Source of the DNA: Trichosphaerium sp. ATCC 40318
Lineage: Eukaryota > Protista > Tubulinea
Reading direction: 5' to 3'
NCBI GenBank assembly: GCA_038496445.1
Contig: JALMLS010000122.1
Location: forward strand, 78,108 to 142,107
Length of the DNA: 64,000 nucleotides
A model generated the notes under the pieces. That model searched no databases, had not been told where the DNA came from, and saw only the letters and a list, made by a program, of their open reading frames with translations. Position numbers and translations under genes: made by a program. Position 1 is the first letter of the stretch, and each line of letters begins with the position of its first letter. Shown here piece by piece: positions 9,788-47,894 of the stretch.

Positions 9788-10543
9788 TCAAGGCTTTCTG
9801 TAGATCATATGGCCAGGACGATGTTCACAGTACAGCACTTCAATATTATCGGCAACATACTTGCAGTGACCTTTTAATTTACCACTTTCAAACCAACTTT
9901 TGTATTCTCCGTGCCTCTTACCATTAGAGAAATAAAGTTGATATTTCAATTGACCACTATTATACCACCCTTTGTATTCACCTTCTTTTTTACCATTCAC
10001 ACAAAAGTAATGCTCTTGTAGATAACCAGTTATTCTCCAAGTCTTGCATTCACCTTCTCGTTTGCCATCAACGTAATACCAAGCCTCCTCTAACTGTCCG
10101 TTGCTATACCACCCTTTGTACTCGCCATGTATCACTCCCTTAGAGTACACATGATGCTCGCATATTTGACCATTCTTATACCAGTACTTGTAATCTCCGT
10201 CGTACATGCCGTCTACAAAATTACACTGACTGCTTATTTGCCCGTCTTCATAATATTGTTTGTGTTCTCCATGGTTTACACCATTTCTCCAATTACTTTG
10301 ACGAAGAACTATGTTATTCGCCAAAGCAGTCTGTTTCCACAAACCGTGTTTGTTCATCTTGTCGTCAAACCTTGAAGTCGTCGCTGTGTATTTGGACAGA
10401 AGAGGCCATAATCTATACACTTCTACATCCAGATCAGCGATATCTAGATGTAATTCAACAGGAAGGTCAAAAAGGTGGCGACAATCTAGTTTTGCAATTG
10501 CTTTCGGTTCTAAGGGTAATTTACGTCTCACGTTGCTTGCCAT
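9788..10543 (-). CDS. Intronless F-box-like + MORN-variant repeat protein
   Basis: ATG at 10543 (MASN). LFDLPVELHLDI is F-box-like, followed by ~6 24-aa repeats of the type GEYKxWYxNGQLxxxxxYxxGK. Confidence 0.8.
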   Translation of the reverse strand: MASNVRRKLPLEPKAIAKLDCRHLFDLPVELHLDIADLDVEVYRLWPLLSKYTATTSRFDDKMNKHGLWKQTALANNIVLRQSNWRNGVNHGEHKQYYEDGQISSQCNFVDGMYDGDYKYWYKNGQICEHHVYSKGVIHGEYKGWYSNGQLEEAWYYVDGKREGECKTWRITGYLQEHYFCVNGKKEGEYKGWYNSGQLKYQLYFSNGKRHGEYKSWFESGKLKGHCKYVADNIEVLYCEHRPGHMIYRKP

Positions 10544-11499
10544 TTGGTACTTTTGAAAAAAGAATTCAATCAAGCCAATTATTTGACCAGTTGATTGATC
10601 TTGATAGTTTTCAGTGAAAATCAGACCACTGGTTAAGATTTAAGGCGTTTTCTGTACATCAGCAAGCCTCATTTTCACTAGCTTGAGTTATTATAAAATA
10701 GGAGCCATACCACTTAAAAACCAATGTGTGAATTAAAATCACTTGGAATCGAACAACGACTGAAAGAAAAAAACTCGAAGTTAAATTTTACTTTCATTAA
10801 AACTTGACGGTACTTCTTCCTTTTGTCTGAGTCAGTACTAATTCGACATTTGATATATTACACTTGTCATTCATATTGGAAGAACGCTACTTGAGAGCAA
10901 CAAAAGATGCTTTACGGACTAAGAAAAAATTCGAAACAATAAAAAAAGCCCAAACGTTTTTTAGTAACTATAACAACCACAACCACATTGCCAATAACGC
11001 TTCTAATAACTTCAGAATTGCTACCTAGTATTGGAACAACCATCTGACGTTATGACAAGATTTAGCTTGTTTCCAACAACTTAAACAAACATGAATACTA
11101 ATAAACAAACTACAATCATGTGTACCTGAAGAAGACTTGCTCCTCTGCAATTATCTTTTTTGAACTTTAGGCAATTTTCTTACTTGTTAGACGTTGGTTT
11201 GGGTGAAAGAACCAAAATTATCTTCCTATTTAGGTAAGTATAGTGCGTAATACACGTGCTCAAATCATTTATTTTCTTCCAAACATACTTGTAGGTGTCC
11301 TACAACTTCAAAGGTAAAGCGAGAATGTGCTACAACTGCTCCAAATAGCATTTTTGTGCACAATTGCCAGTACGTTTTTATAAAGAAAAATCAGTGAACT
11401 TACTTTTGTTAGGGCCTAGCTTTACGTATACATACTGATGCAAGGGGTGTTACAAAAAGGGTTCAAATAGCTACATATTTAGTTAGTACTTAATGCTAC

Positions 11500-11755
11500 A
11501 AAATCAGTATCTTTTCAATACTTTGACTCCTTACTCTGCTACTTCAGTATTAAATACGCGAATTGTATGAACCTCAAAAGAGCTTTAACACCTTCATCAG
11601 TTACTGAAGTATAACAGAGGTGAATAATATGAACACCAGCAAGTGCTTTAATACCTTCATCTGTTATATTCTTACACTATTGAGGCGTACGTCGAAGGCT
11701 TTAATACCTTTGTCAGTAACTGAAGAGTTATAAATGTAAATAGTTTGTACTCAGG
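11500..11755 (-). pseudogene. Decayed 3' fragment of the F-box-LRR family
   Basis: Translates as VQTIYIYNSSVTDKGIKA...KNITDEGIKALAGVHIIHLCYTSVTDEGVKAL/EVHTIRVFNTEVAE*GVKVL. Shares the 29-mer GCTTTAACACCTTCATCAGTTACTGAAGT with the gene at 46925-47692. Contains frameshifts and a stop. Confidence 0.85.
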
Positions 11756-12376
11756 AGAGGCAATGAAATGGCATGTTTGACAAGCTATATCGAGCATCTC
11801 AAGCCGTCCAGAATCTACCAAACACACGGGTCTAGTAGGCTTGAGCGCCATATTTTAAAGCATATCTGAGCTTTTGGGGTTAACACAAAAGGCTAGTTCT
11901 TCGTTCAAAGACACCAGGGCACTGTTTGTAAACCCAAAAAAATCCTTTTTATTATGTGACAAGATTCATACAAGTTTTTTTTTTTTTGTTTGGGTTTTTT
12001 TTCTTTTCAAGTACGAGTCGTTTTCTTCGACTAGTTTTGCATCAAACACAAGAAAAAAATAAGATTGATGCAACATTCATTGTTGTTGTAAAACTAGAAT
12101 ATATTAGAATCGAATACATAGTGAGGAGAGAACATCAAAAGTAAAAAAAAAATCCAAAAAAAGAGAAAAAAAAGGCAGTTCGTTCCAATTTGTTGGATTT
12201 TTGGCTCCCAGCAAGGCTTTGTTTTGAAGTTTTGTACTTAGGTAGCTGTATTAAACTCCAACACAAAAAGAACAAACAATACTCCAACAATATTTTATGA
12301 CTGAGGCTAAATATGAAAAGGAAAAAAAATCTGAACGTACTTTTTTGTTTTTTATTTTTTTTGTTTTCCTTCTCTT

Positions 12377-15300: not shown

Positions 15301-18300
15301 AGTGTTTTCAACACGAACATATCCTTTAGGGGTATAAAGTAAGAAATCCAAAAGAAAACACTTTTTTTTTTTTTGCTTGTACCTCTTCCAGAACGTATTG
15401 CCGTGATTTCTCCTATTGAGTCAACTCTGATGACATCAGATGCTTTACCATTATAACCACCAAGCTCCATGTAACGATCATTGAACTAAACGAAAGTCAT
15501 AAAACTGACAGGAAGGGAAAAACAGCTTCTGCCTAAAAAAGCAACTGACTTTAAATAAACGTTGTACATACACTTCCTTCGCTAGTAGTACGAAGCTTGT
15601 ATTTAGCTCCAGGTACCATAACAATCATACTATTACAAGCACAATCATCTGTTTTAAGAGCAAACTCCTGAAGAGTAGTAAAAGAAGATGTAGCTTCAAG
15701 TTGTGTTGTTCCAGCAAAAGCTTTTCCTGTAGGGTCGAATACAGAGACCTGAATAGTAGCTCTACCAGCTTCCGCACCTAGTATTCATGTATAAGCATAC
15801 CACTTAAAGATATCGTAATATAATAGTACCTTTGACGACAATAGCAGGAGCATACTGTGGAGACAAAGTAACATTAGCTTGGTTAAATATGGACATCAAA
15901 CCAAGAATGTTAGGATGAGATATACTCCATTGGAACTCAAGTGGTATACCAGCCCATGCGAGTGGTGTTTCACCATCCTCTCCCTTTATAAAAAGAATTA
16001 ATTATTGTGACTCTACTCCACGCTATAGCTAAGAAACAACGTACTTCAACGTGAATGGTTTGACTTCTTCTTGATAAAATTGTATTTGTCCAAGTACGTA
16101 TCATTAAGCCTTCCAGTTTCTTTACAGTGATCTTAACAGCGGCTTTGCCTATCTCAAGAGCTTGTCCAGTAATAGGTTCATATGTAGTCATTGTGACGTA
16201 TGCTGTTGTATGACCGACCTTTGTAGCAGATACTACACCATTAACCTTATTGATACTTGCAATATCTTCATGGTCAACATCCCACTCAACCTAAATACGC
16301 ATAAGAATATTCATCCAGAACTTTAGTAATGAACTGAAGGAAATCTCATGAACGAAACAACAGCACTTCGGAAAACCAGAAAAAAGGCGTACATCACGTG
16401 TTGGTGGACCACCCTTGTAGGTGAGTTGAAACTTAGCTCCTGGAAGTAGCACAAGGCTTCTTTGCACAACTTCCAATGGTTCAAAAACATGAATCTAAGC
16501 AAGAGTAAGAATGAAGCAAAAAAAAAAAAATGCAAAAAGATTTCTAGCGAAGAATGGTTTCGATCCATTGACCTTTGGGTTATGGGCCCAACACGCTCCC
16601 TGCTGCGCCACTTCGCTTTTTACGTTGTAATAAGAAGGAAATAAAATGTAGTCTTTCAAAATTATTCTAAAGACTACGATTGACTAGTTTTTGAGCTTAG
16701 ACTGTATTCATTTCGTACTGGTTTTGGGTCAGATGCCACAGTATTACCATTATGGGTAATAAGGGTTGCTGAAATACGGACTGTACCAACAGAGACACCT
16801 CTAACGTAGAATTGGCTTTTCTCAGTCTTATCACGCCTAATGGATGCACCATTGCTATCAAGGGTGATGTCCACGCGAACGTATTTGTATTGATCCTATA
16901 AACGAAGTTACAAATCGATTACAATTTAAAAAAAACGTCATGTTTCTCGTTCATCTGTAAAAGGACGTTAAGCTATCGTACCACTCTGAATACTGATCCT
17001 TCGCTATCCAGAATTTGTACTTTCAACGGTATTTCATTACCGAGCTGTACAATGGTAGTAGATGTGAGAATTAAATCTGAAAAAAATAACGTTAACTTTG
17101 CTGTCTAACAATGCACCAGTACCAGATACATGGGAAACCAAAATACGAGTTTCTGAAATATCAGTACCACCCAAGCACATATCACGAACAGAAACCTATA
17201 AAGAAGATCAGAACTTACTCTTCAAGTTCAACAAAGAAAACAAGAAAAAACAGTTTACCTTAACAACTCCAGGTGCTTGTGGTATGAGTGTAACTCTACC
17301 ATTTCGCTCAGGAGTAACCTTAGCAATCTCTGTAGAATTTACAGAGAAGCTAAATTCTCCACTACCACCTGCCAACCTCAATAAAGCTTGATTCTTTGGG
17401 TGCAAAATGAGAGAAAGAGCAGGTGGCATAAGTTTGACAATTGGATGCAAATAAATACGATAAACGTTTTGTATAGGAACAGAAAATCGTTTGGCCACTG
17501 TTGGAATAACACGCATTGCATCTTCAGTATAACCAGAAGCAGTAATAGTCAAATCAACAGTTCCTAGAGCAGAGTTTTAGAAAAAAAAAATACGAGAATG
17601 GAATACATACCTTCAAAGTCCGCAAAGTCAACATAACGTGCAGGCTGTCCAATCTCTTCAGGCGGACCTTCAAGGAAATTTGCGACAGTCTAAAATCCAT
17701 TAAGATCAGGGCAATATAAACAAGCTGCTTTGTACATTGTTAGATGCTGTCCAAGTTAAATCTAGTGAAGTAAAGTTTGTAAAACGATGACCTTCCTCAT
17801 CATATGCTGTAACGTTAAATACAAGTAAACCATCATTTCTAAGATCGTATTGTTCAGGAAGACCTCCTTTAGACTCTTCCAAGTGATTCAAAATAGCTAT
17901 AAGAGCACATAAGCTCAAAGATCCTTCAAAAAAAAATAAAAATCGATTGCTTACTTTCAGCACATGTAGGAGGAATATTAGCCAACGCTGTTTCTAGAAG
18001 AGTAGCTTCAAGATGGTGGAGTGTTGGGTATAATAATAGGTTCTTTGGAGTATGGCAAGAGATATAAAAGCTTAACTCAGCATCAGCTGGGAACCTATTA
18101 TCATCACTCTCACTATTGGAATAAACCAATTTCGCCAACTAAAAAAAATTAGTAAGATCTCAAAGTTTAAAGTGTCAACGATTAAACAGCACGAGTTGTT
18201 AGTTTTGTTGAAAAGTGAGCGTGCTAGTACTTACTTGGTCTGTTTCTTCCAAACAGGTAATAAGGTATGTCCTCAAATTACCTCTCACAACACGTTTTTG

Positions 18301-23935: not shown

Positions 23936-26900
23936 CTAGCTTGTTTTTAGCTCGTGATTGTTCATCACGAAAGCTGTTTTTTTTTTTTTTTGTTTTTAAC
24001 TATTAGTGCTTTGTACAAATGTACACTATTTACAATTTCTTTGTTTGAAGAACTATTTCTTTTTCACGTGATTAATGAGTCTCACTTTGTGTCTCTATAT
24101 CTGTATGTTTTTCTCGGATACCATATTCTAAAAAAACACAATAAGCATACTATTCAAGCACAGGTAAAGGTAACAACGTACTTTTTGTGACAGTTTTTTC
24201 AACAAGTTCGCCTGCTCTTCTTTTTTTGTTTGCGAACCAAATTCCAACTCCTATCAACACTGCTACAATAAGACCTCCAATAATGATACCAATCAAGAAC
24301 TAAAAGTACACAGTAAGCATTTGCAAGGAGAAAAAATGAATGAGACTTACCAAATATGACTTCTTATTGTCTGCTAACTCCGCCAAAGGTGCTAGAGTTG
24401 GAGGATCAGAGTCATCATCATCGTCGTAAAATGGAGGCAATGTAGTAGGCGGCAAAGTAGTTGGTGGCATGGTAGTAGGTGGTAGAGTCGTAGGTGGTAA
24501 GGTTGTTGGTGGCTCAGTTGTCGGTGGCAGAGTTGTAGGAGTTAATGTCGTTGGTGGCTCCGTTGTCGGTGGCTCCGTTGTTGGGGCAACAGGTGCAGGG
24601 GTGGGTGGTCTTGTAGTTGAAGTAGGAGGAATTACACAAAAGCCTCCGCCAGCAATTATAGGATTTGTACAACGGCAAGATTCATCACAAAAAAAAGTGC
24701 CATCACATGTTTCTGTTTCAGGATCCCAAATGCCATTTCCACAATCTATTTGTTTAAAGGTAAGGCAAAGGTCTTACGAAAAAGGAGATACTGAATAGAA
24801 GATAAATACGTACTGTCAACTACTGTAACATTGAACTCTACCAAGTGGACTATAGGTTTAAGCGTAGGATCTGCTGGGAAACTTATCTCTGATCTGACTA
24901 TTCCCCCAGAAACATAGTAACTGACATTAACCCTCATTTCGAACTGGAAGGCTGCAGGCTTTGGAGTGAAGTCATGTGTTCCAATCAATCCACCAAATAA
25001 GATAGTTGAATCAATTACAAATTCGCTGTCTGACTCATAAGCAAGTGTAACAAAGAACGCTTGTTTTCTGTCAAATATTTGACGTTCAGTAATTAATTCT
25101 GAATCTTCGAATGTCTCTACTGTTGTTTGAATAGCACCGCTTCCAGCTATTTAATATTAACATCAGAGTAGGTAAAAAGTAATTTGAAGAAAAAAAAAAG
25201 AGCACGTGCGCACCTGGATGACCATGAATTAAAAAGACTTTTCCAAACCCATCATTTTCATCACACAATACAACACTTTCAAAAGCTCGATCAAGAAAAT
25301 TTCCCGTTTCAAGGCACGTGAAAGGTGATGAATGTGTTATACGTTGTATTTTAGAGAATTCAACGTCATTTACATCAATGACACCAAAAGATTCGAATAT
25401 TTCACCGTATACAACATATGCTACTCCTTCTTCTTTTGATGCAATGACAATATCAATAATAGTATCACCGTTAAAGTCAAGAGAGTCAACCATATGTGTG
25501 GTATTGCTTTCTCTGTTTTTAATATAAAAGCCAAATCCTGTAGGTTCTATCAAGTTTATCTCACGTGTTAAAAAGTCTGAGCTACTTTCGATACCATAAA
25601 CATCTCCTGAGAATAAAGTAAGAATTATGTTTAATAAGAAACTACAAAATTGTTACTCCTTGATTGTTGTGGCATACCTTGACCACTTGATATCACTAGT
25701 ATATTTTTGGAAGGAAATGGAACTTGTTTGTGTGTACCAAAAGTACCAAACCTATGTCCTGGATAGAGACCCTCCATTATGCGACCACGTTGTACTGTTG
25801 GGCTAGCAGGCGAAAACAGTGTATCGGATTGAACTTCCAAAGGTCCTGGTTTGGATGTTACAATAACACATCGTCCAGTATCATTATTCCAAGTAGGATC
25901 GCATATGCCAACAGCATTAATACCATTATCTAAAGGTGTTCCTGATATACGAATGTTAGAACTCAACAACGAAGAAAGCAAAGTTGAAGAAAAGTATGAC
26001 ATCAGAAAATAAAATATGATTTACCTGCTTCAAAAGTGTAGTTTCCAAACAATGATATACGTGTACTAAATTCATCACATATATTTAATGACTGATCCCC
26101 AGGTGTTTCGTATATGTCTTTCAAACCTTCTGTGAGGACAATAGCGCCAGATTGATCTGACAGTGCAATTTCGAAAGTATCAGATCCACCAAAGTCAAAA
26201 GCTACTAATGTATCCCCGATATTTTCGTTTGAAGACCCAGTACCAGTATTACAATAAAAAGCGCTTTTGGCACTAGTGAGATTTTGCCCAAAGACGAGAA
26301 CCTATTCGTAAGAGTGAGCAAAAGAACAAACGAATTTCTTTGACTTGTGGGAGGATTTACAAAAAACCGGTGTGTTAGCGTACTTCTTGATCCAGAGCAA
26401 TCATAAGCTCCATATTAAAATCAGAACCAATATCTATCGTTGCCAACTACGCAAAAAGAATAAGAAGATTGAAAATAAAATCCATAAAAAAAAATGGTTC
26501 TTGATTGACTTGTGCTTTAATGACAAACAACGTACTGCTTTTCCGAAATTGGTATGAGGATTTGTTTCGTTACCATACACGCTATGAATATGTGTTGCGT
26601 TTGGTCCAAAAAAATCGTATGTTACTGCAGGCATGCCTATTTGTTTTGTTAATCCATCTGAAATCATTCTTTTATTTCTTATCTCTGTAGGACGTACCAA
26701 CGTAGTTTGAGAAATCTTCTATTAGGTATGCGTTACCTTGATTTACGCCGTCAGGTACTGTAGGATGACCTATTATCAAACCATCTACAAAACAATCAAT
26801 CACAACGTAGCTTTGATAGACGTTGTGGTTCTAAGAGAACACATACAAATGCCTTACCTGTGACTCCATCACGGAGATGATTGTAGCGAACCAATGAAGC

Positions 26901-27178: not shown

Positions 27179-27497
27179 TGCTTCTATCGTTTGTTTTGAT
27201 GAGTTTTGATGAGTGAGGTAGAGTGAAGTAGAGTGAAATATTGCAAGATTGAAAACAAGTTATCACGCATGTTATCGGTATAAATGGTACAGCATAAAGC
27301 GGAATAGAGTAAAAACGTAAAATTAGAGCGCAAAGAAGAAATACAGCCATCTTCTGTAGCTGGTTTTCTGTCTTTGTACAGATTATTTTCATAAATCGCC
27401 AAACTTGGAAGTTCGAAGTGAAATTTGAGGATTAAAACCAGCTCCATTAGCTCTTTTTTGTTTCGCTTTATAATAGCCTTAAATGTGTTGTTAATCG

Positions 27498-27905
27498 ACG
27501 ATAATAACTAGCAGACAAGCAAAACGATTCAAAAAATTCACAAACCACTACACTCTGTTTGAGGGCAAATTAGACAATACTGAGCTTTTAGACATACCAA
27601 CAGAGATATTAGTTGAGTTTGTGGACCGTTCATCTCAATTTTTCGTTTCTCAAAGCTGTAAACGTTTATCAGACGTCATTCACAATCATGTTGTGTTAGC
27701 TGGTGCAAGCAATATAGGTTTATCTTTAACAACCGTCACTGAAAAAATTCCGGCGTTGGTTGGAGTTAAGAATATAATCCCTTCCTGTTGTAAGAAAGTC
27801 ACAATATCATGTATGAAATTGCAGGTGTACACAGCATTAATCTGTCATGTGCAGTCACTGGTAACTCTTTTGATAGTATTGCAGGTATACATACATTTTT
27901 ATCGT
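27498..27905 (+). pseudogene. Decayed F-box-LRR gene (5' part with internal deletion)
   Basis: Frame opens at ACG 27498 (possibly a mutated ATG): IITSRQAKRFK...LLDIPTEILVEFV...SQSCKRLSDVIH, homologous to the N-terminus of 46925-47692. Then LAGASNIGLSLTTVT, LVGVKNI and frameshifted AGVHSINLS / AGIHT repeats. Confidence 0.8.
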
Positions 27906-28198
27906 GTTTCGTTCGCATCTTTTGGGCAAACACCTGAAGGTACACCGTCGCTATTAGTGTAAAGCTTACCGTGAAATGACATTCCTAATACTACTTATAT
28001 AGGTTTGTATGCTTGCTCACAACTACAGAAGGCGCCTCGTTTGAAGCAACGTTCAAAGTACTCGCGCTTGTAAAGAATAAAAACCGTTAACGGTTCTTCA
28101 AAAATCGTTCAACACTTTTTGTACCCAGAATTTAGTGCTATTGACAGCGGACACAAGTCCGCTTGTTTCTTTCAACACCTCGTACTAAACCGGGTGCG

Positions 28199-29244
28199 AT
28201 GGAAGCAGAAGAGCATGGTAATACAGGTACATCACAAACAAACACAATCATTACATCTAACGCCGCGTAAGAGCTACCCCCTGAGGTGTGGGACTCGATA
28301 CTGTCATATTTAAAGAATATTGGTGATTTTAGAGCGTTTGCGTCTTCGTCACGAGAATTTAACGCTTTGGTGGATGCATCAGCCCGTAAACCATCTGTCT
28401 ACGCCCATCTCATAATACACAACTCAATTAAATACGACCACGTGAAAAAACTTGAACAATACTTACCGCTCTACAACCCTCATTTAGACGGCTTTGACAG
28501 AGATGGTGGAAAGATTTATGGCTCCTGGAAGCTCGTGTTCAAACCTCCTGGTGGGAAAGAGCTTATGCTTCAAATCAAAAACACTGATACGCTCAAAGAT
28601 CTTCGGGAACAAATGTGTCTTAAAGTTGGTGCAACAGATTTGGTGCTTATATGGGGAAGTACAAAACTTGCAGTAGGGTCAACATATCGTCTTGGCGAGA
28701 TAACAGACGATACTACAATGGGACAGCTGAACCCTGGTGTTAGAGATGGATATCCGCCAATATTTTACATCGTTAGAAAATACTCACCTCGGTCTAAAGA
28801 AATGAAAGAAAACCAAGGCAAGCAGTTTTTTACCCTATTTTTATTCTTTTCTTTGTTTTTTTTTCCATATTCGGTCAAATCATTGTCGTCTTTGTCTTCT
28901 AGCGTGACACGTAATTGTACAAATCTCCTCATTTTATTAAAGTTACATGATATACATTTACACTCCATTTATTTATCTTGTTTTTTCTATTAATGTCATG
29001 TGCAGCGTTCAAAATATGGTCAAATCAACCTAGCAGACGAAAAAAATATTGGAGGTTTACAGCACAACAATACTTACTATCAAAGGCTGTAAATTGTAAC
29101 AGCCCTGGCGCTGCTAAGCTATTGATTAATAGTAACAAATTAACGGACGAGGAAGCAAAGGAAATTTTGAAGCATGGACATATACGCAGATGGTTAAAAA
29201 GACACAGAATTAACAGACATGGCAACTCTCTAGACGCCATGTAA
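28199..29244 (+). CDS. F-box protein with ubiquitin-like domain, 3 exons
   Basis: MEAEEHGNT|ELPPEVWDSILSYL...FASSSREFNAL (F-box) and LVFKPPGGKELMLQIKNTDTLKDLREQM...LVLIWGSTKL...DDTTMGQL (Ubl). Introns ~28227-28271 (GT-AG) and 28818-29005 (GC-AG). Confidence 0.75.
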
Positions 29245-33382: not shown

Positions 33383-34678
33383 TTACATACACATTCTTAT
33401 ACGATGTTTTTTGTTTATAACTTCCTGTACATCATTCAAATATTTGATTCCCTTATCTGTTATCCCAGAACAAAAAGATATGTTGATACTGTGTACACCA
33501 CACGCCAAGGCTTTCAAGCAATCATCTGTTACACTTGTACCTGATAAATTAATAGTATGCACACCAGCCAAAGGCTTAATACCATCATCTGTTAGGTCAG
33601 AAAGATTGTATAAGTCAATAGTGTGAACGCCAACTAATGTCTTAACACTGTCATTTGTCAAATTGTAGCAATAGCCAAGGTTAATAGAATGTACTCCAAT
33701 CAGTGCTTTTATGCTTTCATCCAACACCATTGTATGACTGATATCAATAGTGTGAACTCCAGCTAACTCTTTAATACCTGCATCTGTAATTTTTAGACAG
33801 CCACTTAAGGCTATGTTATGAACACCAGCCAACGCTTTAAGCCCTTCATCTGTTACTTTTGTGTTACTGATACTGATAGTATGAACACCAGCCAACTCTT
33901 TAATACCAACATCTGAAACGTGTTCACAATTGCTTAAGTTAATCGTATGAATTCCAGCAAATGCTTTAACCTCTTCATCACGTATATAAGTAAAACTGAC
34001 GTCAAGGTTATGAACACCAACCAATGCCGTAAAGCCATGCCAAATGTTTTGACAGTTCTTTAAGCTAATAGTATGAGCGCCAGCCAACGCTTTAAGCCCT
34101 TCAGCTGTCACCTCTGTACATTGCATATTGATATTATGAGCACCTGCCAACGCCTTAAGACCTTCAGCTGTCATCAAATTATTGTACCCAATGTTAATGG
34201 TGTGTACGCCTTTTAACGCTTTGAGTCCTTCATCCGTCAGTTTGGTAGCACTAACATCGATCGTATGAACACCAGACAATGTCTTAAGGCCTTCAGCTGT
34301 CACTTTAGTACTTCCTAGAATAATAGTATGAATAGAACCTGATAATTCTTTAATGCATTCGTCTGTAACTTCAGTATTGTAACCATCAATATAAAACGCT
34401 TCTTTTAGATACTTAAAGTCCGTAGGCTTCAGATTGCACTTCAAATGGACTTCGAATTTTTGTATAAGCGAGGGACATGACTTAAATATCTCCGCAAGAT
34501 TTTCTCTGCTGCTAATTTTAATAACACGTTTTTTATAGCTGTATAAGCTTGCGAATAGAGAGCATGTTTCACGTAAAGGCTGTATACATGTGCTACTGAT
34601 GAAATTGAATACAAAAACCCACATCTCAATTGGTAGGCATGGTATATCATCAGCAATACGATTAGATCCTTTATCCAT
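33383..34678 (-). CDS. Intronless F-box + LRR protein (431 aa, ~15 repeats of 21-22 aa)
   Basis: LPIEMWVFVFNFI...LRETCSLFASL F-box; repeats LAGVHTIxLSxTxVTDEGLKA. Confidence 0.92.
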   Translation of the reverse strand: MDKGSNRIADDIPCLPIEMWVFVFNFISSTCIQPLRETCSLFASLYSYKKRVIKISSRENLAEIFKSCPSLIQKFEVHLKCNLKPTDFKYLKEAFYIDGYNTEVTDECIKELSGSIHTIILGSTKVTAEGLKTLSGVHTIDVSATKLTDEGLKALKGVHTINIGYNNLMTAEGLKALAGAHNINMQCTEVTAEGLKALAGAHTISLKNCQNIWHGFTALVGVHNLDVSFTYIRDEEVKAFAGIHTINLSNCEHVSDVGIKELAGVHTISISNTKVTDEGLKALAGVHNIALSGCLKITDAGIKELAGVHTIDISHTMVLDESIKALIGVHSINLGYCYNLTNDSVKTLVGVHTIDLYNLSDLTDDGIKPLAGVHTINLSGTSVTDDCLKALACGVHSINISFCSGITDKGIKYLNDVQEVINKKHRIRMCM

Positions 34679-35253: not shown

Positions 35254-37636
35254 TTACAATAGAAGCATTGACAATAATACAGTAAGAACAGCAACACCAA
35301 CATGCGAAGCAGAACTTGGTGCTATTGGCGTAACAGGTGCTACAGGCTCAACAGGTGCAAGAGTTGAAGCTTCAGTTGGTGCTGAAGTAGTTGGAGCTAC
35401 TGGAGCAGTTGGTGTTTGATCAACATCAGACTCTAAAGCTTCTTCATTTACAGTTGCTGAAGGATCCCACTCGAATGTTTCGCAATCTTCTCCATCTACA
35501 AGTTGAGCTATAACACGTATTTGTTTCATGCCAACTTCTTTAGGTTGACGGTTTGTGACGTTAGCGTTGATCTTTGAAATGACCTTCAAAACAACAGCCA
35601 CTTCTTTTTCTTCGTCATCCCAAGTAGTACATGTTCCTGTTTTCTTAGCTCTGAAGATAGCACCACAACCACAAGTAATGCGATTGAAATCAGTGTTATC
35701 TGGGTCATCCTCTAGAGCACCAAAGTCACCACTGCAGCGGAGATGGAGGGAGATTACACGTCTATAACAAAGTAAGAATAAACTCCTTAAAAACACTAGG
35801 CTTTCCAAAAAAACGGTCACGTACGTGGTGTTCTTAGTTTTTCTGACACATTGTGACAAAGCTAAAACGCTTTCAATACCAGCGCCAAGAGGAGATTCAT
35901 CAGCGGAATCCATAGAATCTGCGGTAGCAGCTTTTTGTCTGAAAGACATACTGCACCCATCATCGAAAGACATTCTTTGGACTATTGTTGCAACTCCAGG
36001 TCCATTTCCGTCATTTCCAGTAGTGTCATTAGCATCAGTAGAACCTTCTCCAAGGTCGATTGAATCTTCTCCTTCGCCATCAGTGACCATGTTGCGAGAA
36101 TTCAAACAAACATCTGGATCATCAATATTTTCTTCAAGGCAATCTGAAACTCTATCGAAAACCATTTCGAATGTAGTCTTTGAAGCATTCTTACATTTTG
36201 CGAAAGCACATCTTACAAAAGGTGCTCTGGCTGTCGTTCCATTATTTTCTTTGACAGTAGATACACACTGGCATGTTGTCAGTTCAAAGAAAAAAAAGAC
36301 AAAAAAAACCGATAGTTGTGCACAATAACTTCAACGTACGTTTGCGACGTCCTCATCTGGGAAATCGATAGGTCTTCGCACTGCAGTGGTAACTACTCTT
36401 CCGTCTAATTCTTCTTCTACATCAACATCACCAGGACGTGTTACGTTGCATACTTTATCAAGCGCAACAAGTTTTGATCTGCTTTCATTTCTGAGACTTG
36501 TGCTGTCGTTTCCAGAATTGGCACGTGTACAAAAGTTAATGTAACGTCTTCCAGCTTTACGTAGGGCAAGACAAGGAGCTGAGCAAGTCTAAAGAGTATA
36601 AGAGAACGGCAAAGGTAAGTAAAACAAGATACGTACGTTGTTCTCCAAAGCGCTCTTGCAAACATTGAACAAACCAGCGATTCGCTGTCTTAGTTCGCCA
36701 CATCTTTGAACTTTGTTACAAACCTCTTTACGTTTTTGAACAAGAGGCTTAAACCTCTTCATGGTATCAAGAACAGCACTACGATGAATACAGAATCTTG
36801 CAACATTAGCTAGAGCCTTTAATCCAAAATCACATCTATCATTGCATGCTCCTTCGAGGATATTGCTACGAATGAAACAATTTGTTACAACGCTATCTGC
36901 AAGTTCCTTGAATCTATCAAATAGGGAACCTGGACATTTACGGTCTTTTGGAGGAGGTGAGCTAAGAACAAGTGAGTTCAAGAGAACAATCATAGAACAA
37001 GAAAACAAGACGGTAAAACTTCAGTTTGGAACGTACCATTGCTGTCTCAAGAAACCGATAACACGTTGTACATCGATGTTCGATCCATTCATACTTTCGT
37101 TTCTTACTGCGTTATCTAGACGAGCATCTTTGATACAAAACGCAATAGCACGTGATCTGTTTTTGTATGCAATTGCGCATTCTGATGTATTATCACATGC
37201 TCCAGGGATACGTCCTTCATCGATTGTAAAGTTATCTCTGGTTACAGCACGTTTCATAACTTCGTTACTGAATTCACTTGGTGTACGAGAAGGGAGATCG
37301 ATCATGTCATCCTCCTTGGCCTTAAAAGGAAAGTAAGAACAAATAAAGAAAGTGTTTAAAAGAGCTTGGCGTACTGGGCGTGTTGCGTTATTTATTTTAT
37401 CCAAGACTGGTTGGCATTTACGTAGGATAGCGCTAAAGTCCACTTTAGAGCAATCAAACTCGTCTTCTTCAACTGCTGAAGAGAGTACTATAGTTGCAAA
37501 GTTAGATTCAAATTCGATGCACTATAGTGTGCGAACAACAAAAAGGTTCTTTCCGAGTGACCACAAAAGTACGACAGTTGTATCATCATAATAACTTACC
37601 TATAAAGCACGAAAGTAATATGAGCAAGAGCTTCAT
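35254..37636 (-). CDS. Secreted/GPI-anchored Cys-rich surface protein with Pro/Thr/Ala stalk
   Basis: Signal MKLLLILLSCFI, Cys-rich helical exons, a D/E-rich region, PTAPVAPTT stalk, and C-terminal SSASHVGVAVLTVLLSMLLL* resembling a GPI signal. Confidence 0.7.
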
Positions 37637-38768
37637 CTTTGGTTTAGATTTGATTTTTTTGTATAAAACTAAAATTGATAAAAATAAACATCTCAACCCC
37701 GCTGTTTTCGGCCGATTAACCAAAAAAAAACTCGTGCCGCATTGTTTACGAAAATTGTCCACAGTGCACTAAAATACGTTACTTACAAGGAGATACTTTG
37801 GCGAAACATGGAGAACGAAGGGTAAAAAATTGCGGCCAAAAAGTCGGCAATGCAACTTGCATTCTTGGTTTTCTACCAAGTTTCCTCCTAAAAAGAAAAC
37901 TCACTAATCAAACAACAACTGCAGAGCGTATTTTACTTAATACTGAAATAAAACTACATTGCTAAAAATGGAAAAAAAAAACCACAATTCGTCAATGATG
38001 TTTCTTTTTTCGAGTGATATGTTCGTTCATGTCTACAAAAAACTTGTCTATTCTGTAATGAACACTTCGACACTAAAGAATTTCTGGTTGAACCGAAAAG
38101 GCATCTGTTTAGAACGACACCAGAAGCTCACCTCTGGTAACGCCAAAGTCAATACTCCAAGCAACTAGATGTTTTGCTCCAAGATGACTACTGCTCTACA
38201 TTCTTGGTAGGATAGATTAGTACATAAACAGTCTAGAGTTGCTCCAAATTGCAATCCTCTTATGTTGCGGCAACCACGCAAATGACAAAAAGGTGTGAAG
38301 AAAGGGACAGAACAAAACAAATCCATATGCCAATAAAACATGTACAAATGAAACGACGAATATCTACTTTATCCGCTGAGCAAGTCCTAGTAACTTTTGG
38401 CCAGAGGACACCCATGTAAAACTAGTAAGCGTTCAGTTGCACTAGAAACACGTGCAACATTTGTTAAAACTGGAAAATTGTGTTTTTTGTTGCCATGGAG
38501 CTTATCAACAGCCAAAAGATACCGCAACACGTTGAAATTTATGAAAATGGAGCTCCATACTATCTAATAGCCATAAATCAGACAAATTGACCAAAACGGC
38601 GCTTCAGCTTCTAGTCTCACGTGGCAGAATCTTCTGCGTATAGGTGGGGCGCCGTAGAGGTCTACCATGGATGTCAGTCTGCTTTTTTATTATTTTCAAA
38701 ACAAAAAGAGTCAATTCAGAGATTATCAAAACAAAGTTACGTGACCACCGCTCAGAGGTGAATGCTCT

Positions 38769-41648
38769 ATGGCAAACACAGACCAGTTCGCGTATGACCC
38801 AAACGATTTATACGAGGACATCGTTAAACAACAGCCAGAATACCTCAATCAGTCTGGAAACACGTTACAATACGACCCTCAGGAATTTCAAGAAGGTGGC
38901 CTTTTTGACGAGGGACAACCATTAGGCGATCTAGCGTATGATGTCTCAACGCCTGCGTACCCTTCAAGTATACAAGGTACTGATCAGCTTATTGGCGCTG
39001 ATGCAGGGACTTATGGCCAAGAGCCTTTCTATAACCAACCGCTCACCTATGGACAACCTATGGGGCACCAACAACAACAAATACACCAAACTCAGCCTCA
39101 AACACAGCCTTTTGGGCAAAACAACTTTCAACAACAAGTGCAAACGCCAACGAAAGTGATAAAAACAGTACCAACGAACAATGCAATGTTACCTGCAAAG
39201 CAAGCGGAGGTTGTAATGTTTCCGTTTAACACTACTGGTGATCTTGATGGCAAAGCAATTTACACAGAAGTACAGCCGGAAACAGCAATTGTAGCGCCTC
39301 AAGTGTCTCAGTTATTATCACAGAAGCGCTATCAAATTGAACGATACATTATAACGGCCCTTACACAAATGAAGGTTTCTATCGCGCAACTAACTACCCC
39401 TGTGCCTGTAGCACATTACCAAGGATTATGCGCCAGACAAACACAACTACAGAATGAAATACAAAGGCTAAAAGTAGAAATACAAGCTCTGGAGGAGAAA
39501 TTCCTTCTAGACCCTCCGTACGTTATTGTTTTTACCGATTACCAAAACTAGAACTGACACAAACGCACGCAGAAATTTTAAACTTCTATTACGGCTTAAA
39601 TCAAGTCTATTGCTTCATGACGCTCAATTACAACTATATATGCACGAATTGAATCAATTAACCGGAAATGATCAATTTTGCAGGTACCGTATTGTTTTAA
39701 ACGTAAAACCTGTCTAATATTATTATTTATTAGCGTATTGGCGTCTTTGTTTATTGTAGACCAACCATTTCCATGTACAGTGAAAAAGGGCAAACCAGTA
39801 GGACCAATAGAATTACATTTGCTCACGGGCGCACGAACGCGTCTAGAGATTGTAACACCATGCACAGCAGAACTTCTTCAAGGTACGTAAACCAAAAAAC
39901 CTCGCGAGCGTTTTCAAAGTACAATCAACTCTATGGCCTTGTTATTGAACATGACGCTATTATTGCGCTCTTGCTGTTGGAATTAAGCATTATTAATAAT
40001 GTTTACAAAGGATCCAACCTCAGACAACGACGAGGGAAGAAGACAGAGATGAATCATATATCAGAGAACTTTGTAAACAATGTAGCGCGATTTACAAGGC
40101 TGGTGAGTCCTTACTCTCTTTTTTTTTTCTTTTCCCGTTTCAAAGAAGCCAAAACGTTGGTTTTCTCATCTTGATTTTCGTTTTGACTTGTTGTATAGAC
40201 GTTTACAAATGGTTCAAATATGAATACAGTCAATATAAAGTTTAGAGTAACAGTTAAGGCTATTGTAAATGGTAGAGAGATGAATCAAAGCTTGGTATGA
40301 CAAAACTTGCACATAAAAAAAAAAGCGCCAGCACGAAATTTCTTGTTAGGTATTTTAGCTTATTCTGGCGTAGGAGAGTAGTATGAGTAAACCAGTCATT
40401 GTTTTGACGCATAATGATCAGTATCATGTTGCAGTTGGAACTCTCTTGGGTCTTCAAATGTTCAAGGGAATAAATGGTAGAAAAAAAAGCAAGACTGATC
40501 CTCGTTATTAATGTTTTGGTTTAGGTCCAAAGTTGGAAATTCCTTTGAACCAATTTTGTAACTACTTACAATGTGCATATATGGAAGCAACGCAGCAAGC
40601 ATCTGATAGAAATCTTCGACCTCTATGGCGGTCAGATTTACAGTATTTGTATGTCTTTGAATGATTGTTTTTGTTTTCGATTTGAAGCTTCTTTTATTTA
40701 TTCCTATTTGTCTTTTCTTACAATATATAGGTGTGCAACTCGGTTGAATAAGGATCTAGAGAATACAGCCGCTTGTATTATCCGTGAGGAATTTATTGAA
40801 TTTTGGAGTTGGTTTGGTCCTTTTCTTCAAAAACTTCGATACCAGAAGCATTTACAACCTATGTGGCTTCAAGGCTATGTATGGGGATTGCTTACAAAGG
40901 CACGGATAAAGTTTGAAACGATTTTACATTAGACTGTTGTGACTTTATTCATTTTCTTCTAATTGTTGTTTTTAGAGTGAAGCAGAGTGTTTATTGTTAG
41001 ATCAGCCTATGGGATCTTTTCTTGTTCGTTTTTCTGATAGTAGAAAAGGTGGTATTGCAGTAGCATATCGATGGGGGTACGTGCTGATGTTTTTTTTTTT
41101 TTGATTTTTTTTTTTTTGTTGAAATGCCAACTGCTATCATGAGGGCTACCATGCCGCTTGTATTGATGGATTGTCAAATTTTTTGCAGATCTTTTTTTGA
41201 TCGTTTTTAGGGAAAGTGGTAAAAAAGCAGTAAGGCACTATATGCTACGACCGTCGGACACATCAGAAGGACAGACTTTTCCAGAATTTCTTAAAAACTC
41301 ATCGACGTTTGTGCGGTTAATTCAAATACAACATAAGCGAGGTTACAAACAAGCACTTCTACGTAATAAAGATAATGCATTGATAAGGTGGTATAGAAAA
41401 AAGCAGGATGAAGTGAGCATCTCTGGTACGTAATAGTGAAAGCGTTCTCTTAGCTTTTTTATTCTTTTGAGTTGTGTTTTTACTGATATTTTCTTTCAAG
41501 GCTATGACAGGGAGCTTCTAGCGCTTGAAACACGGGTGAAGGGTATAGCATTTCATACACCACCTACTTCTCCAGATACGACTACTGGTATGGTGAGTAG
41601 TTGTTTGAACTTTTCTTTTACTGACTTTTTTTTTTGCTTTAGATGTAA
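38769..41648 (+). CDS. STAT transcription factor (Dictyostelium-type)
   Basis: Q-rich N-terminus, coiled coil, ASLFIVDQPFPCTVKKGK, FTNGSNMNTVNIKFRV, FIEFWSWFG...LRYQKHLQPMWLQGYVWG, SH2 GSFLVRFSDS, and C-terminal SGYDREL as candidate phospho-Tyr. Confidence 0.9.
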
Positions 41649-41894
41649 TGTGATGTTTGTTTTTTTAAAGAACGACGTTTATGAAACATACCAGTTTGTG
41701 TGGTTTTTTTTGAAAAAAGGTTGTAAATTTCTTTTGTACATAGCAAAAAACAACAACAGGAAGAAAAAGCAAAAAAGAAAAAAAAAAGAAGAAAATAAAT
41801 CAAAAAGTTTTTCATTCAAACTTTTATTTGTACAAATTACTAGCACATAAACTAGAAGTTAAAAAGTGGTCAGCTAAGGGAAAAGAGCCAGTAT

Positions 41895-42043
41895 GTTTAT
41901 GCTATTGACATCAGTTACACTTCAGTAACTGCTGAAGGCGTCAAAAAGCTTGTGGGAGCAAAGACAATTTTTGTTTATGACAGTTATAAAAACAATGTTG
42001 CTAAACTTTAAAGGGGACTACAGTGTACACTGGCTACTTTTAA
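41895..42043 (+). pseudogene. 3'-terminal fragment of the F-box-LRR family
   Basis: VYAIDISYTSVTAEGVKKLVGAKTIFVY, then a frameshifted LKGTTVYTGYF* that resembles the LNGTCVYTF* end of 46925-47692. Confidence 0.75.
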
Positions 42044-42184
42044 GCATAAAATACAAATACTACAACAAAGAATGACAAGAGGAGCGAAATGAAGTAACAC
42101 GTGATTGTAGTAACAATTACAATTATTTATTATTTTAGAAGACTGAGGTAATCTTTTGTAACAACAAGAACCCAAAAACAGTAT

Positions 42185-42833: not shown

Positions 42834-43249
42834 AGCACCGTTCTTGTTTTAAAAGGCTGGTAAAATGAGCAAACGGCGGACTTAACGTATAATATCACTT
42901 CTACTTCGTTTTTCTTGCTTAATGGTGCAAAATCTAGCTGTGTTGCGCATAATTTTTCGAACTTTTCTTACAGACTTAAACCTGGCTGTGATAGCACTGA
43001 CTTAATTGGTAAAGTGCCAAAAAAAAAAGTGTCACCAAGTACTACCAAGGAGGATGACACAACCAATGTTAGAACTATTGGTACGGAATGATTTGTATTT
43101 TTTATTCCGAATAAAATTGAATAGTGTTCAACACATTTACTGCTGTAACATCTTTAGTCAAATGAGAAGCAACAGCTTTGCTAGTGGCTGAGGAAATACT
43201 TTTCAACCTAGGTAAATAATAAGGCTTATTCTATAGCCAAGACTTCTTG

Positions 43250-44472
43250 AGGTTAAAGAAAAAGACGGATTGCAAACAAGGAAATAAAACCAAAAATTCG
43301 CCTTGTTGTGATCTCCTTGTGAAACCTAAGCTGGGTGTTTTAGGACGTACATTTGTCGCTGTGTGTCTGATAAAGAACTTAAAGGTCCATTTGGTGCGGT
43401 AGGACTGCAAATAGATTGAAAAGCTGCATTGATTTCTTGTTCGATTGTTCCTACCATCTCAACTTTAGCTTTTGTAATTGCATCCTAGAAAAACCAATGC
43501 TTAGAATAACATAATGATCAATACTAGTCATACTATTAAAGCAACGAGTGTATGTCCAATATGATCTGGAGAGCTACGTCGTGGTGGTAAGGACAAAATG
43601 CAACAAAAAGCGAAAAAAAAGTGATAAAAATTTCAAACGACAACGCACGTGACAGGCTCTGATACACATTTTTCTAGTTCAGAGCATAGAGAAATTATAT
43701 TATTAAGGATTGACATACGTAATAAATGATCTACATACGATGAGTACTTGGAATAAAAAAAAAGTGAAAATAAAAAAACATAGAATGACAATTGACAAGT
43801 TTTTGCTTACCATCATGACCATTTCCTTTAAATTTTTTACCACATACACGTTTCCCTGTCCTAGGGAATAGTGATGCTAGACCAGATTTCTCTACACAGG
43901 CCTTTGGTATATTAATAAGTCACATTGAAGTAGATCGTGATTTCTATTGCTAATTTCCAGCGTACTTTCAAAGGTTTTGTATTTAATTTGCTTCCCAAGC
44001 GTTTTATTAATGTATAAGAAGGAACACGCAATGGATCTGTTATTCTTTGTTAGTAACCAAAAGCAATCAATATGTTTATGGTCTACAGCCATTTTACACG
44101 CGTTTCATACCTTTGACGAACTCCTCTTCGCGGTTTAAGCCTTTTAAAAATTTTCTCTAATAAAAAGCGTTAAATTATTACTGTAGCACATACTTACGTA
44201 TCTGACATCCTTTGAGAGCATGCCAGCGTACAGAGTACACTGTGTCATTAATTTTATAGCATTGTGGCTTTTAGAAAGATACAAGGGTTCTCCCAAGCGC
44301 ACTGTCAAGCCTACAATGCTGTTTCACTAAAACAACTTTTAACTGAGATAGTCGTACATCCTGGTTGCGAATTGCTGTTTATTGTCACCAATGGAGGACC
44401 ATTCATTGTGTAAAGCACTTGCCACAACAGAACAAGGCGCTTAATAGCAAAACGAGTCTCACTTAGCTCCAT
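43250..44472 (-). other. Unassigned exon-like segments (hypothetical gene or pseudogene)
   Basis: Several GT-AG-bounded open segments, but no clean full model or recognisable motif. Confidence 0.25.
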
Positions 44473-44510
44473 GAGTACAATAATTCTGTAAAGACCACTC
44501 CTACGCGTCT

Positions 44511-46768
44511 ATGGCATCAGTAACGGTATGCTTTATTAAACGTCAAACTCAGCGATACTAATTATCACAGACGTGCTTGGTAGCGTTCATTGCAATATTT
44601 ATCGCATTGGTATACGTCGCACTGTATACTGACGAAGAAGCAAACAAATCCACTCCTTTGACGCCTATTATCATCAAGCCATCATCAAACTTGGATGAAT
44701 ACGCCATTAACCGACGCCCTGTTGTTTTACGTAACAGCCTAGTTAAGAAATGGAGTGCGTTAGATTTGTGGTCTCTAGAATACTTGAAACAAAGGCTTCC
44801 GACAACGGTACGCATTGCATGTCACTTTTGACACCCCAATTTCTGGAATGAAGTAAAATAATCAACTGTTACAGATAAAAAAAGTAAAAGTTAGTGAACA
44901 GCGATTTTTTGCTAACTATGCAACTCAAAAAGATCATCCTATCCGTGGTATTATTTACGAGTGTCTTGTGTATACAAACATTAATTATTTAAGGGTATGA
45001 TGATCCAGTGACACCTGTAAAATACGATGGAGAATTTGAGCTGGATTCCTTTGTTGATGATGATTTATACAGGTCATTTGTTCGCGTATTTTGCACTATG
45101 AGCTACTAACACATAACTCAGATATACCACACATCCTCTTAGATCGATATCACCATCATTAGAGGTTTGTTATTTAGCGTAGGGTTTCGTAATCAAAGTT
45201 TGTTTTTTTAATACTTTTATCAAGGTTGATGTGATGCCTGCTGGAGGGTTGTTTTCAAGTGCTTGTGGATCATCAACACGAAAAGCGAGGATGCTTATAA
45301 TAAGCTCATCTGTACGCTTTGATTGTCGTTCGTCGTGATTGTTGTTATCCTGTCTAAGAACCTCAAACAAAGGGAGTAGTTACAACACCACATTATGATT
45401 TGGCAGAGAATTTTTTTGTACAAATTGTCGGTGTTAAAAATATCAAGCTTTGGCCTCCTTCTTTTGCTGAAAAATTCCACGTGTTCCCTGCTTTACATCC
45501 ACATCATAGACAAGGGCAGATATATAATCTAAAAAACGTCAACAAAACCTTGTTTCCGGAATTTAAAGGTACTTGGTATTGTTGTATCCAATATCTTTCT
45601 CATTTAATGCAGATGAAGCTCCATTCATAGCAAGGCTTTTACCAGGAGATATACTATTCATACCACCACACTGGGTATGTTCCAACCTTATTTAGGACTC
45701 AACGTTTACAGAGGCTGTACAAGGCGTTTCAACATTTGCGTTTCATTTTTCTTCTCTATCACGTGATATCTGTTGTGTTTTTTTCTAATGACCTATTATC
45801 AAGGTACATGAAGTTGAAACTAAAACGTTCTCAGTATCTTTATCGCACACGTGTGAAAGTGAAGGTACATTTTCATAGTGTATTCTTCTTTTTATGGCCT
45901 TTTTGCTTGTACAAAGCTTATGTCTCAAACGTTTTCTTTTACAGTAACTTTTTGTACCTGTACCATAAGCCCTACCTAGCTCACCTTCATAACTAATCTG
46001 AAATGTTTGATATAGAGTACAGAATCTTTGAAAAATCGTTTGTATCATTACCTTTGAGTGGTATAAGTGATTCAGTAAAGCAACAAGTAATTGCTACATA
46101 TCTATTTGCATTGATTGAAAGAGGTATTGTCAATGCTCTTCTAAGCTTTGTTACCCTTTTGTGTAACTTTGCTTTATTGCTTTAAACTCATTGCATGTAG
46201 TTGTTGGTGAGGGTTCTTCAAGTAATTTCTTTGGGCATCTCTACAACCAACGTTATGCGCCTCTATTTGGAGAAAATCCAGGCAAAAGGTAAAAGTGGTT
46301 ACAGTTTTTCTTTGTTGGTTTTTTGGTCAAATACTACTTGTGTTTAAATACCAACAACTTGATTCAATACCACACATAATATAGTGTGTTTTATTCTGTA
46401 TAATTGACCTCAGTCACAGTGTAAAGTGCTGTTGTTTTAGCATACTTTTTCTGGAGTGTTTTTATGTTTTTTTTCGTTTGGCTAACAAGTTGCTTATAAA
46501 TACTCGTGTAGGTCTATTGCACTTTTATCTATGGAAGATATTAAACACCTACATAGTGCTATTGAAACACACAAATCACTATGGGAGCATGTTAATACAG
46601 ACATTAGAAAGTATGTGCACAACTGTTTGTTTTTGTTACTGTTCTATTTCATTAACTTTTTTCAGTACTTTGCTTGGTATCTATGTTGAAAAAATATCTT
46701 TATGGGCATGTAATGATGAATGGGAAGATGTACCACTGTTCATTGCATCTCTATCACGTGTAAACTAG
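44511..46768 (+). CDS. JmjC (cupin-8 type) Fe(II)/2-oxoglutarate oxygenase with N-terminal signal anchor
   Basis: TM VAFIAIFIALVYVALY; RRPVVLRN...W.ALDLWSLEYL; TTPHYDLAENFFVQIVGVKNIKLWPP (HxD); LLPGDILFIPPHW|VHEVET (distal His). Confidence 0.88.
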
Positions 46769-46924
46769 ACAACAAAAATAAAAAAAAACCATCCTAATTT
46801 AATTACCTGCAGTACTTCAATTGACGAATGATTGTTTTATTGTCTTTATCTTCTTTGCAAGTTATACAGCTATTACATACTATTACGTGTTGAATATAGG
46901 ACGCCCAATACTTAGTACTCTTGG

Positions 46925-47692
46925 CTAAAAGGTATACACGCAAGTCCCATTCAAAATTGTAAACCATTCCCCTGTAACATTAGTGGTATGTGCATAAATA
47001 GTGTATGTTGGTGCACCAACAAGTACTTTTATGCCTACATCAGTTATTGAAGTGTTATTAAGGCTTATGGTATGAACTCTGGTGAGTGCTTTAAGACCTT
47101 CATCAGTAACTGAAGTGTGATCAAGGTAAATCTCATTAACTCCAGCAAGTGCTTTAATACCTTCGTTGGTTACTGCAGTATTGCTGAGGTATATAGCATG
47201 AACCCCTTTAAGTGCTTTAATACCTTCATCAGTTACCAAAGTGCTGCAGAGGCCAATAGTATGAACTCCAGCAAGTGCTTTAACACCTTCATCAGTTACT
47301 GAAGTGTTAGCAAGGTGAATCTCATGAACTCCAGCAAGTGCTTTAACACCTTCATCTGTCACTGTAGTATTAGAAAGGTAAATCGTGTGAACACCAGCAA
47401 ATAGTTTGATAATGTTATCGTCGAAACGACGTCCTTTAAACGTGATTTTTGTGTATTTAAGAATACCAGCATATTTCGCAGCTGATTTTGCCTGAACTGG
47501 TGTATTAATTGTAATGGCGTGATATCCAATAATATCGTGAATGATAGAAGCAAACAAATAACAAGTCTGACAAGCTGCAAATCGTGATTTGGTCGTTTGA
47601 CGCAAGATGTGCGCTAACATCTCTGTAGGTAGCTGTAACAAACTCGTACTGGTGGTGTCAATTTTAGAACGTTTTGAGGTGGAAAGCATCAT
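46925..47692 (-). CDS. Intronless F-box + LRR protein (255 aa, ~7 repeats of 21 aa)
   Basis: LLQLPTEMLAHIL...CQTCYLFASII F-box; 63-bp tandem units encoding LAGVHxIxLxxTxVTDEGxKA. Confidence 0.92.
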   Translation of the reverse strand: MMLSTSKRSKIDTTSTSLLQLPTEMLAHILRQTTKSRFAACQTCYLFASIIHDIIGYHAITINTPVQAKSAAKYAGILKYTKITFKGRRFDDNIIKLFAGVHTIYLSNTTVTDEGVKALAGVHEIHLANTSVTDEGVKALAGVHTIGLCSTLVTDEGIKALKGVHAIYLSNTAVTNEGIKALAGVNEIYLDHTSVTDEGLKALTRVHTISLNNTSITDVGIKVLVGAPTYTIYAHTTNVTGEWFTILNGTCVYTF

Positions 47693-47748
47693 GTGGTAAT
47701 TTCAAAGCGATTTCTGTTAAGTTTTTGTAGTTTTAATTAACTATTGTA

Positions 47749-47894
47749 GACGGCAGTCAAGTTATTAATAACTATCAAGTCAACCTGCACTTTTCTTGCT
47801 GAACAAAACGTCTTAACTGAACATTATTGCGTAATTGCAAAGTCTGGTCAAAGTAAATAATAATTAATAATCTATTGATAACTTGACTGCTGTC
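47749..47894 (+). repeat. Inverted repeat forming a fully paired 22-bp RNA stem (two G-U pairs)
   Basis: GACGGCAGTCAAGTTATTAATA (47749-47770) pairs with TATTGATAACTTGACTGCTGTC (47873-47894). Confidence 0.85.

Follow-up and report, generated by a model that had tools for sequence, protein, structure and literature searches.

We analysed a 64,000-nucleotide stretch of the genome of Trichosphaerium sp. ATCC 40318 (contig JALMLS010000122.1, positions 78,108 to 142,107; hereafter the window, in whose own numbering all positions are given). The window is AT-rich, eukaryotic DNA with a GC content of 36% throughout. It contains six loci of one gene family with leucine-rich repeats (LRRs), distributed over both strands: two intact single-exon genes, here called A and B, and four dead copies. 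A first-pass annotation, made from the sequence letters, had taken five of these loci for members of an F-box/LRR family, that is, for substrate adaptors of SCF (Skp1–Cul1–F-box) ubiquitin ligases. We therefore asked what the individual loci encode, how they are related to genes elsewhere and which account of the family fits them best.

The clearest case is gene B (46925..47692, minus strand), a complete open reading frame (ORF) for an F-box/LRR protein of 255 residues. The F-box occupies residues 19–60 (47513..47638, minus strand), where a Pfam F-box-like match coincides with a predicted three-helix fold. When the N-terminal 98 residues are searched alone, the match reaches 24.9 bits against a cut-off of 24.3. 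Moreover, a profile of the N-terminal domain made only from proteins of other organisms recognizes B with an E-value of 2e-25. The F-box is followed by a conserved linker of about 40 residues, which is common to protist transcripts and is not found in the viral genes, and then by six 21-residue LRRs (47021..47398, minus strand). The latter are supported by repeat parsing, by a repeat hidden Markov model (HMM; domain E-values 1e-11 to 4e-14), by the Pfam LRR_6 match (8e-13) and by tandem-repeat detection at the DNA level, with a period of 63 nucleotides and 73% matches.

The AlphaFold model of B (predicted local distance difference test, pLDDT, 80) has helices at residues 23–31, 37–43 and 45–55, followed by a regular strand–helix solenoid. 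In PDB its fold is matched best by SKP1-bound FBXL17 and FBXL2, and SKP2, likewise in an SKP1 complex, is also listed. Sequence and model together make B a credible FBXL-type SCF substrate receptor, with predicted binding to Skp1. For B, then, the initial assignment to an F-box/LRR family is upheld by the Pfam F-box-like and LRR_6 matches and by the FBXL-type predicted fold.

Gene A (33383..34678, minus strand) is likewise a complete single-exon ORF, encoding 431 residues with about 14 repeats of a divergent subfamily (LRR_6, 3e-18). The repeats of both proteins are 21–22 residues long and follow the motif GVHTIxLSxTxVTDEGLKALA. By LRR_6 scores and repeat parsing they are of the cysteine-containing/ribonuclease inhibitor (CC/RI) type, and strand and helix units alternate in the model of B. 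The N-terminus of A is a different matter. Pfam finds no F-box in it even at an E-value of 10, and the independent N-terminal profile gives no match (E-value 5.2). On the other hand, residues 11–46 align in register with the family F-box, including the LPxEM and CxLFAS motifs (hhalign E-value 0.003, with a probability of only 10%). The earlier statement that the window holds two intact intronless F-box/LRR genes is thus correct as far as two complete single ORFs with LRR_6 repeats and the F-box of B are concerned, whereas an F-box in A is not demonstrated. We regard A as an LRR protein with a possible F-box.

A similar question arises for a single-exon gene of MORN_2 repeats (9788..10573, minus strand; ATG at 10543), previously described as an F-box–MORN gene. 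The MORN repeats are real: MORN_2 (PF07661) matches several stretches at 3e-18, and the model is a β-hairpin array with pLDDT above 90. Among viral folds, it is most closely matched by MORN proteins from Orpheovirus, from pithovirus-like viruses and from Hyperionvirus. The F-box, in contrast, is not established. Neither the gene nor any of its five homologues has a Pfam F-box match, the N-terminus is modeled as helical but with pLDDT below 50, and its hhalign match is limited to the LPxEL start. This start nevertheless opens an N-terminal helical motif that is conserved in four transcriptome or metagenome homologues (P0120–P0123). Given the absent Pfam match and low-confidence N-terminus here and the two failed F-box searches with A, both genes might be plain repeat proteins with no link to ubiquitin ligases, in which case the postulated "arsenal" of adaptors would shrink to the B-type family. 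The in-register alignment of A and the conserved LPxEL motif of the MORN homologues count against this reading, and we lean slightly away from it while taking it as a serious possibility.

The dead copies were sought with the repeat HMM in all six frames of the window, complemented by tblastn, the N-terminal profile, DNA identity and direct reading of frames. The best preserved one (11516..11851, minus strand) retains a truncated F-box remnant and about four repeats. The HMM detects it with an E-value of 6e-17 at 11540–11750 (minus strand), although its pieces lie in three frames and are broken by stops and frameshifts. The DNA of this B-type copy is 78–84% identical to the repeats of B, compared with 73–78% among B's own repeats. 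A second B-type relic (27567..27907, plus strand) has an F-box-like N-terminus without a preceding ATG, degenerate repeats and at least one frameshift. It is found by tblastn with B (7e-5), whereas the repeat HMM reaches only 0.006 at 27699–27895 (plus strand); the corresponding ORF, 27495–27959, is matched by the other-organism N-terminal profile at 1.6e-6. The third locus (41895..41975, plus strand) is a fragment of about 1.5 repeats with an HMM E-value of 3e-5 at 41901–41945 (plus strand) and 81% DNA identity over 52 bp to the relic at 11.6 kb.

All three of these had been noted before as decayed copies, and all three were recovered, with strong evidence at 11.5 kb, moderate evidence at 27.5 kb and just the small fragment at 41.9 kb. 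To them we add a fourth, the sixth family locus of the window, which lies outside the range covered by the first-pass annotation. This B-type copy (63665..63914, minus strand) consists of an N-terminal domain and repeat remnants with stops and frameshifts. It is detected by tblastn with B (0.002) and with the protist transcript protein P0177 (2e-6), and its ORF 63723–63875 (minus strand), which has the repeat remnants downstream, is matched by the other-organism N-terminal profile at 1.7e-6. With four of the six loci dead, the earlier suggestion of birth-and-death evolution fits.

The copies are dispersed, as had been reported: they stand singly, on both strands, with unrelated genes between them and without tandem arrangement. 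Two neighborhoods qualify this picture. About 950 bp separate the MORN gene from the relic at 11.5 kb, and another ORF with an F-box-like start (28271..28990, plus strand) follows immediately downstream of the relic at 27.5 kb, in the same orientation. The F-box-like part of this ORF, which has no ATG before it, scores 19.7 bits (E-value 7e-4), below the Pfam cut-off, and the middle of the ORF has weak ubiquitin-like similarity (ubiquitin and Rad60-SLD, E-values 0.07–0.09). Judged from such sub-threshold matches, the ORF might be one more gene of the ubiquitin system, preceded by an exon upstream, or else an additional relic.

The single-exon structure of A and B stands out against their surroundings. 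Conserved genes of the window consist of many small exons, and introns are dense around the LRR loci. The oxoprolinase/hydantoinase gene at 51.7–57.9 kb, for example, is split into at least eight ORF pieces that match successive positions of the Pfam profiles Hydant_A_N, Hydantoinase_A and Hydantoinase_B, and a Big_2-like gene at 13.5–21.6 kb forms a long series of ORF pieces of about 70–140 residues. Host exons were searched individually, without a joined spliced model. The ORF pieces of these two genes bear out the description of the neighbors as densely intronised.

Intronless genes in an intron-dense genome, present as dispersed single copies on both strands, are what one would expect of processed retrogenes spread by reverse transcription, one of the two routes suggested initially. 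The ends of the copies, however, give no sign of it. Direct reading of the flanks revealed no 3′ poly(A) tract after A, B or the relics. By eye, no flanking direct repeats or target-site duplications are evident at the ORF ends, where short ones would be indistinguishable from chance in AT-rich DNA, and comparison of the window with itself detected no similarity between copies beyond their coding parts. Lacking poly(A), target-site duplications and a common flank, retroposition is unsupported, although old copies could have lost the first two of these marks. In addition, no intron-bearing parent gene is known from the 64-kb window. Viral and metagenomic relatives of the family are also single ORFs, and the lack of introns may therefore be its original state. 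Overall, we consider a retroposed origin of the copies improbable.

We next turned to relatives outside the window. Exact look-ups of the A and B proteins in public collections returned no record, and a word search with only the N-terminal domain of B found no match because no five-residue words are held in common. A profile search of 1.84 billion representatives produced 585 matches at an E-value of 1e-30 or better; among the 150 of these that were listed, only about 11 extend over both the N-terminal domain and the repeats. The closest relatives of the window proteins are protist transcripts. At least eight expressed family members (P0001, P0008, P0016, P0043, P0151, P0172, P0177 and probably P0002) occur in JGI sample 3300016894, also with MMETSP culture transcripts, or in its MMETSP assembly, and the amoebozoan Clydonella contributes one relative (P0023). 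The first-pass annotation took five loci in 64 kb to imply very many copies genome-wide; the nearest available transcriptome shows at least eight members rather than hundreds. Identity between P0177 and B is 48% overall and 58% over residues 12–80 of the N-terminal domain. Among 185,579 bacterial and archaeal species genomes, the repeat motif has no confirmed relative, and for this reason we dropped a link of the subfamily to Chlamydiae or Legionella.

Several metagenomic contigs (L010–L019, from Ga0209181, Ga0105048 and Ga0335394; 42–45% GC) carry head-to-tail tandem arrays of near-identical genes with an F-box-like domain and GVHTI repeats. Their layout contrasts with the scattered loci of the window.

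Giant viruses are the other source of relatives. Three of them are encoded on giant-virus-like contigs with dense short orphan genes: P0036 (354 kb), P0004 (10.6 kb) and P0163 (709 kb). On the last of these (Ga0209960_1000028), the P0163 gene is found near genes for BTB, F-box and GIY-YIG proteins, which suggests clustered families of ubiquitin adaptors. Two further contigs, L028 and L029, were recovered from IMG/VR with a DNA pattern of 21-residue period. In L028 the family gene adjoins NUDIX, capping-enzyme and ankyrin genes, while L029 belongs to a giant-virus metagenome-assembled genome with genes for an XRN-type exonuclease and a kinase. The third IMG/VR match to this pattern (L027) proved to be a simple repeat that fitted it by chance and was rejected. 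IMG/VR scans with a DNA pattern of 22-residue period, and with protein patterns derived from the family alignment and from P0006, found no match. The L028 and L029 proteins have the same 21-residue repeat and are 42–48% identical to B, in agreement with the earlier remark that F-box and repeat genes occur in giant viruses. At the level of predicted structure, B is matched best among viral proteins by F-box/LRR proteins from the mimivirus group and from pithovirus-like viruses.

In the phylogenetic tree, B pairs with P0177 as its sister (support 92/86), and both fall into a clade of protist transcripts. Together with Clydonella and two metagenomic sequences, this clade has a support of 95/94 and excludes the giant-virus contigs. 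The B-type lineage thus predates the split of two protists, and this speaks against a rapid turnover of the intact gene. For the intact genes, the fast turnover ascribed to the family at first is unsupported, given this orthologue-like partner of B in the transcriptome of another organism. Gene A behaves differently, forming a long unplaced branch whose nearest sequence is the L028 protein, at 38% identity.

Could A, or possibly the whole family, have come from giant viruses and subsequently adjusted to host composition? The position of A outside the protist clade, with a giant-virus protein as its nearest sequence, is in line with such an origin. So are the contigs of nucleocytoplasmic large DNA virus type that combine F-box-like genes with the same 21-residue repeat, and the mimivirus-group and pithovirus-like proteins among the fold matches. 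Other observations point the opposite way. B is nested among protist transcripts, no viral hallmark gene adjoins any of the copies, and the GC content at third codon positions is 0.31 in A and 0.27 in B, close to the 0.17–0.27 of host exons. Transfer from host to virus would also explain the viral relatives equally well. We find a viral origin unlikely. As for recent insertion by a virus, the second route put forward in the first-pass annotation, it is unsupported in view of the host-like composition, the lack of viral neighbor genes and the placement of B in the protist clade of a tree that includes viral sequences.

Comparison of window, protist, viral and metagenomic repeats showed that variation is concentrated at repeat positions 6, 8, 9 and 11, whereas the His-Thr pair at positions 3–4 is almost invariant. 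Positions 6, 8, 9 and 11 are the usual solvent-exposed sites after the strand, and by the standard LRR rule positions 3–4 also face the concave side. In terms of sequence, this combination of variable and invariant sites is compatible with binding of different targets that have a common feature, and it neither proves nor excludes a variable receptor.

The first-pass annotation had gone further and proposed a "variable receptor" arsenal, that is, rapidly diversifying SCF receptors directed against proteins of intracellular pathogens. In keeping with this idea, four of the six loci are pseudogenes, variation falls on exposed repeat positions, and F-box families of nematodes and plants provide a precedent (PMC8120010; PMC4209131). 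Yet two exposed positions of the concave surface, His and Thr, hardly vary across hosts and viruses, B has a conserved counterpart in another species, and family size in one transcriptome is modest, with at least eight members. An immune arsenal therefore strikes us as a rather remote prospect. Much the same holds for a more specific scenario, an arms race with giant viruses. Here the host would diversify exposed sites in the repeats of its SCF receptors so as to mark viral proteins for degradation, viruses would have captured copies of the family as decoys or to redirect the host ligase, and the relics would be debris of turnover. We think it quite doubtful that this describes the family.

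Comparison with known systems helps to place the family. Among SCF receptors, B most resembles the FBXL class (Skp2, FBXL2, FBXL17), likewise with a three-helix N-terminal F-box followed by a CC/RI-type LRR solenoid. It differs in having repeats of 21–22 rather than about 26 residues and a near-invariant Gly-Val-His-Thr-Ile strand. Identity to solved FBXL proteins is only 14–17%. F-box/LRR and MORN multigene families of giant viruses that infect amoebae have been reviewed (PMC5753266). Those of the mimivirus group, pithovirus-like viruses, Orpheovirus and Marseillevirus are also single ORFs with an F-box at the extreme N-terminus followed by LRRs. In distinction to them, B has a longer, conserved linker and belongs to a protist clade, and the window copies are embedded in cellular genes rich in introns.

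In nematodes and plants, birth-and-death F-box families have in common with the window family a lineage-specific expansion, many pseudogenes and variable substrate-binding positions (PMC8120010; PMC4209131). Their C-terminal domains are mostly FTH, FBA or Kelch, copies number up to hundreds, and positive selection has been shown; the window family instead has short LRRs as its C-terminal domain. Finally, NEX1a of the amoeba symbiont Neochlamydia is a large, fast-evolving family tied to amoebae, in which a conserved linker of about 50 residues joins the F-box to the LRRs (PMC4209131). The order of F-box, linker and LRRs is the same as in the window family, but NEX1a is bacterial, whereas the repeat motif studied here yielded no confirmed relative in the bacterial and archaeal genomes.

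Based on sequence and modeling, we propose that the window loci probably represent a lineage-specific family of single-exon FBXL-like genes that evolves by duplication and decay and has a predicted ubiquitin-ligase function. Members would combine an N-terminal F-box with a solenoid of unusually short, 21–22-residue CC/RI-type LRRs. The F-box would dock to Skp1–Cul1, and the solenoid would recruit the substrate for ubiquitination. Duplication followed by decay would account for the content of the 64 kb: among B-type copies, one intact gene and three to four relics, and in addition a single A-type gene, divergent but intact. The lineage of B-type genes appears to predate the divergence from another protist in which an orthologue-like gene is expressed. 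Because giant viruses carry the same repeat family, genes would also have moved between hosts and viruses, in one direction or the other.

Several points weigh against this proposal. The F-box of A is not detectable, and A may therefore fall outside the SCF adaptors. A local cluster could also account for six loci in 64 kb. The tree was built from 156 columns of sequence rich in repeats, which extend from the F-box through the third repeat, and does not resolve the deep nodes. The label "amoebal" for the family rests on one named relative, that from Clydonella.

In other respects, the family of single-exon FBXL-like genes behaves as F-box families usually do, duplicating and decaying, and at the family level its connection to giant viruses is clear. 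It adds to the known F-box/LRR proteins a subfamily with short repeats of 21–22 residues and a conserved His-Thr ladder, which is represented in genomes and transcriptomes of protists and in giant-virus contigs. The general understanding of SCF ligases and of gene-family evolution is unchanged by it. Should a role in host–virus conflict prove true, the family would offer a tractable ubiquitin-ligase adaptor common to, and possibly contested by, protists and giant viruses.

The remainder of the window contains a protein kinase, a cupin/JmjC-like gene, a DEP-domain gene, an animal-type haem peroxidase and ORFs without a known family. The Big_2-like gene encloses a tRNA-Met gene with the anticodon CAT (16545–16617, minus strand), which has the same orientation and is apparently intronic. 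An inverted repeat of about 200 bp, with arms at 3691–3890 and 4039–4235 that are 82% identical and about 150 bp apart, could be a hairpin or an element resembling a miniature inverted-repeat transposable element. At 24432–24581, a tandem repeat of 15/45 nucleotides is located inside a minus-strand exon-like ORF with a weak extensin-like (proline-rich) match. The region 35257–39551 consists of a series of longer ORFs (358, 143, 166 and 268 residues) without a Pfam family. Among their products are a Gln-rich protein and one that is rich in Ser, Thr and Pro and has a hydrophobic C-terminus, and the GC maximum of the window, 0.405 at 38–40 kb, falls within this region.

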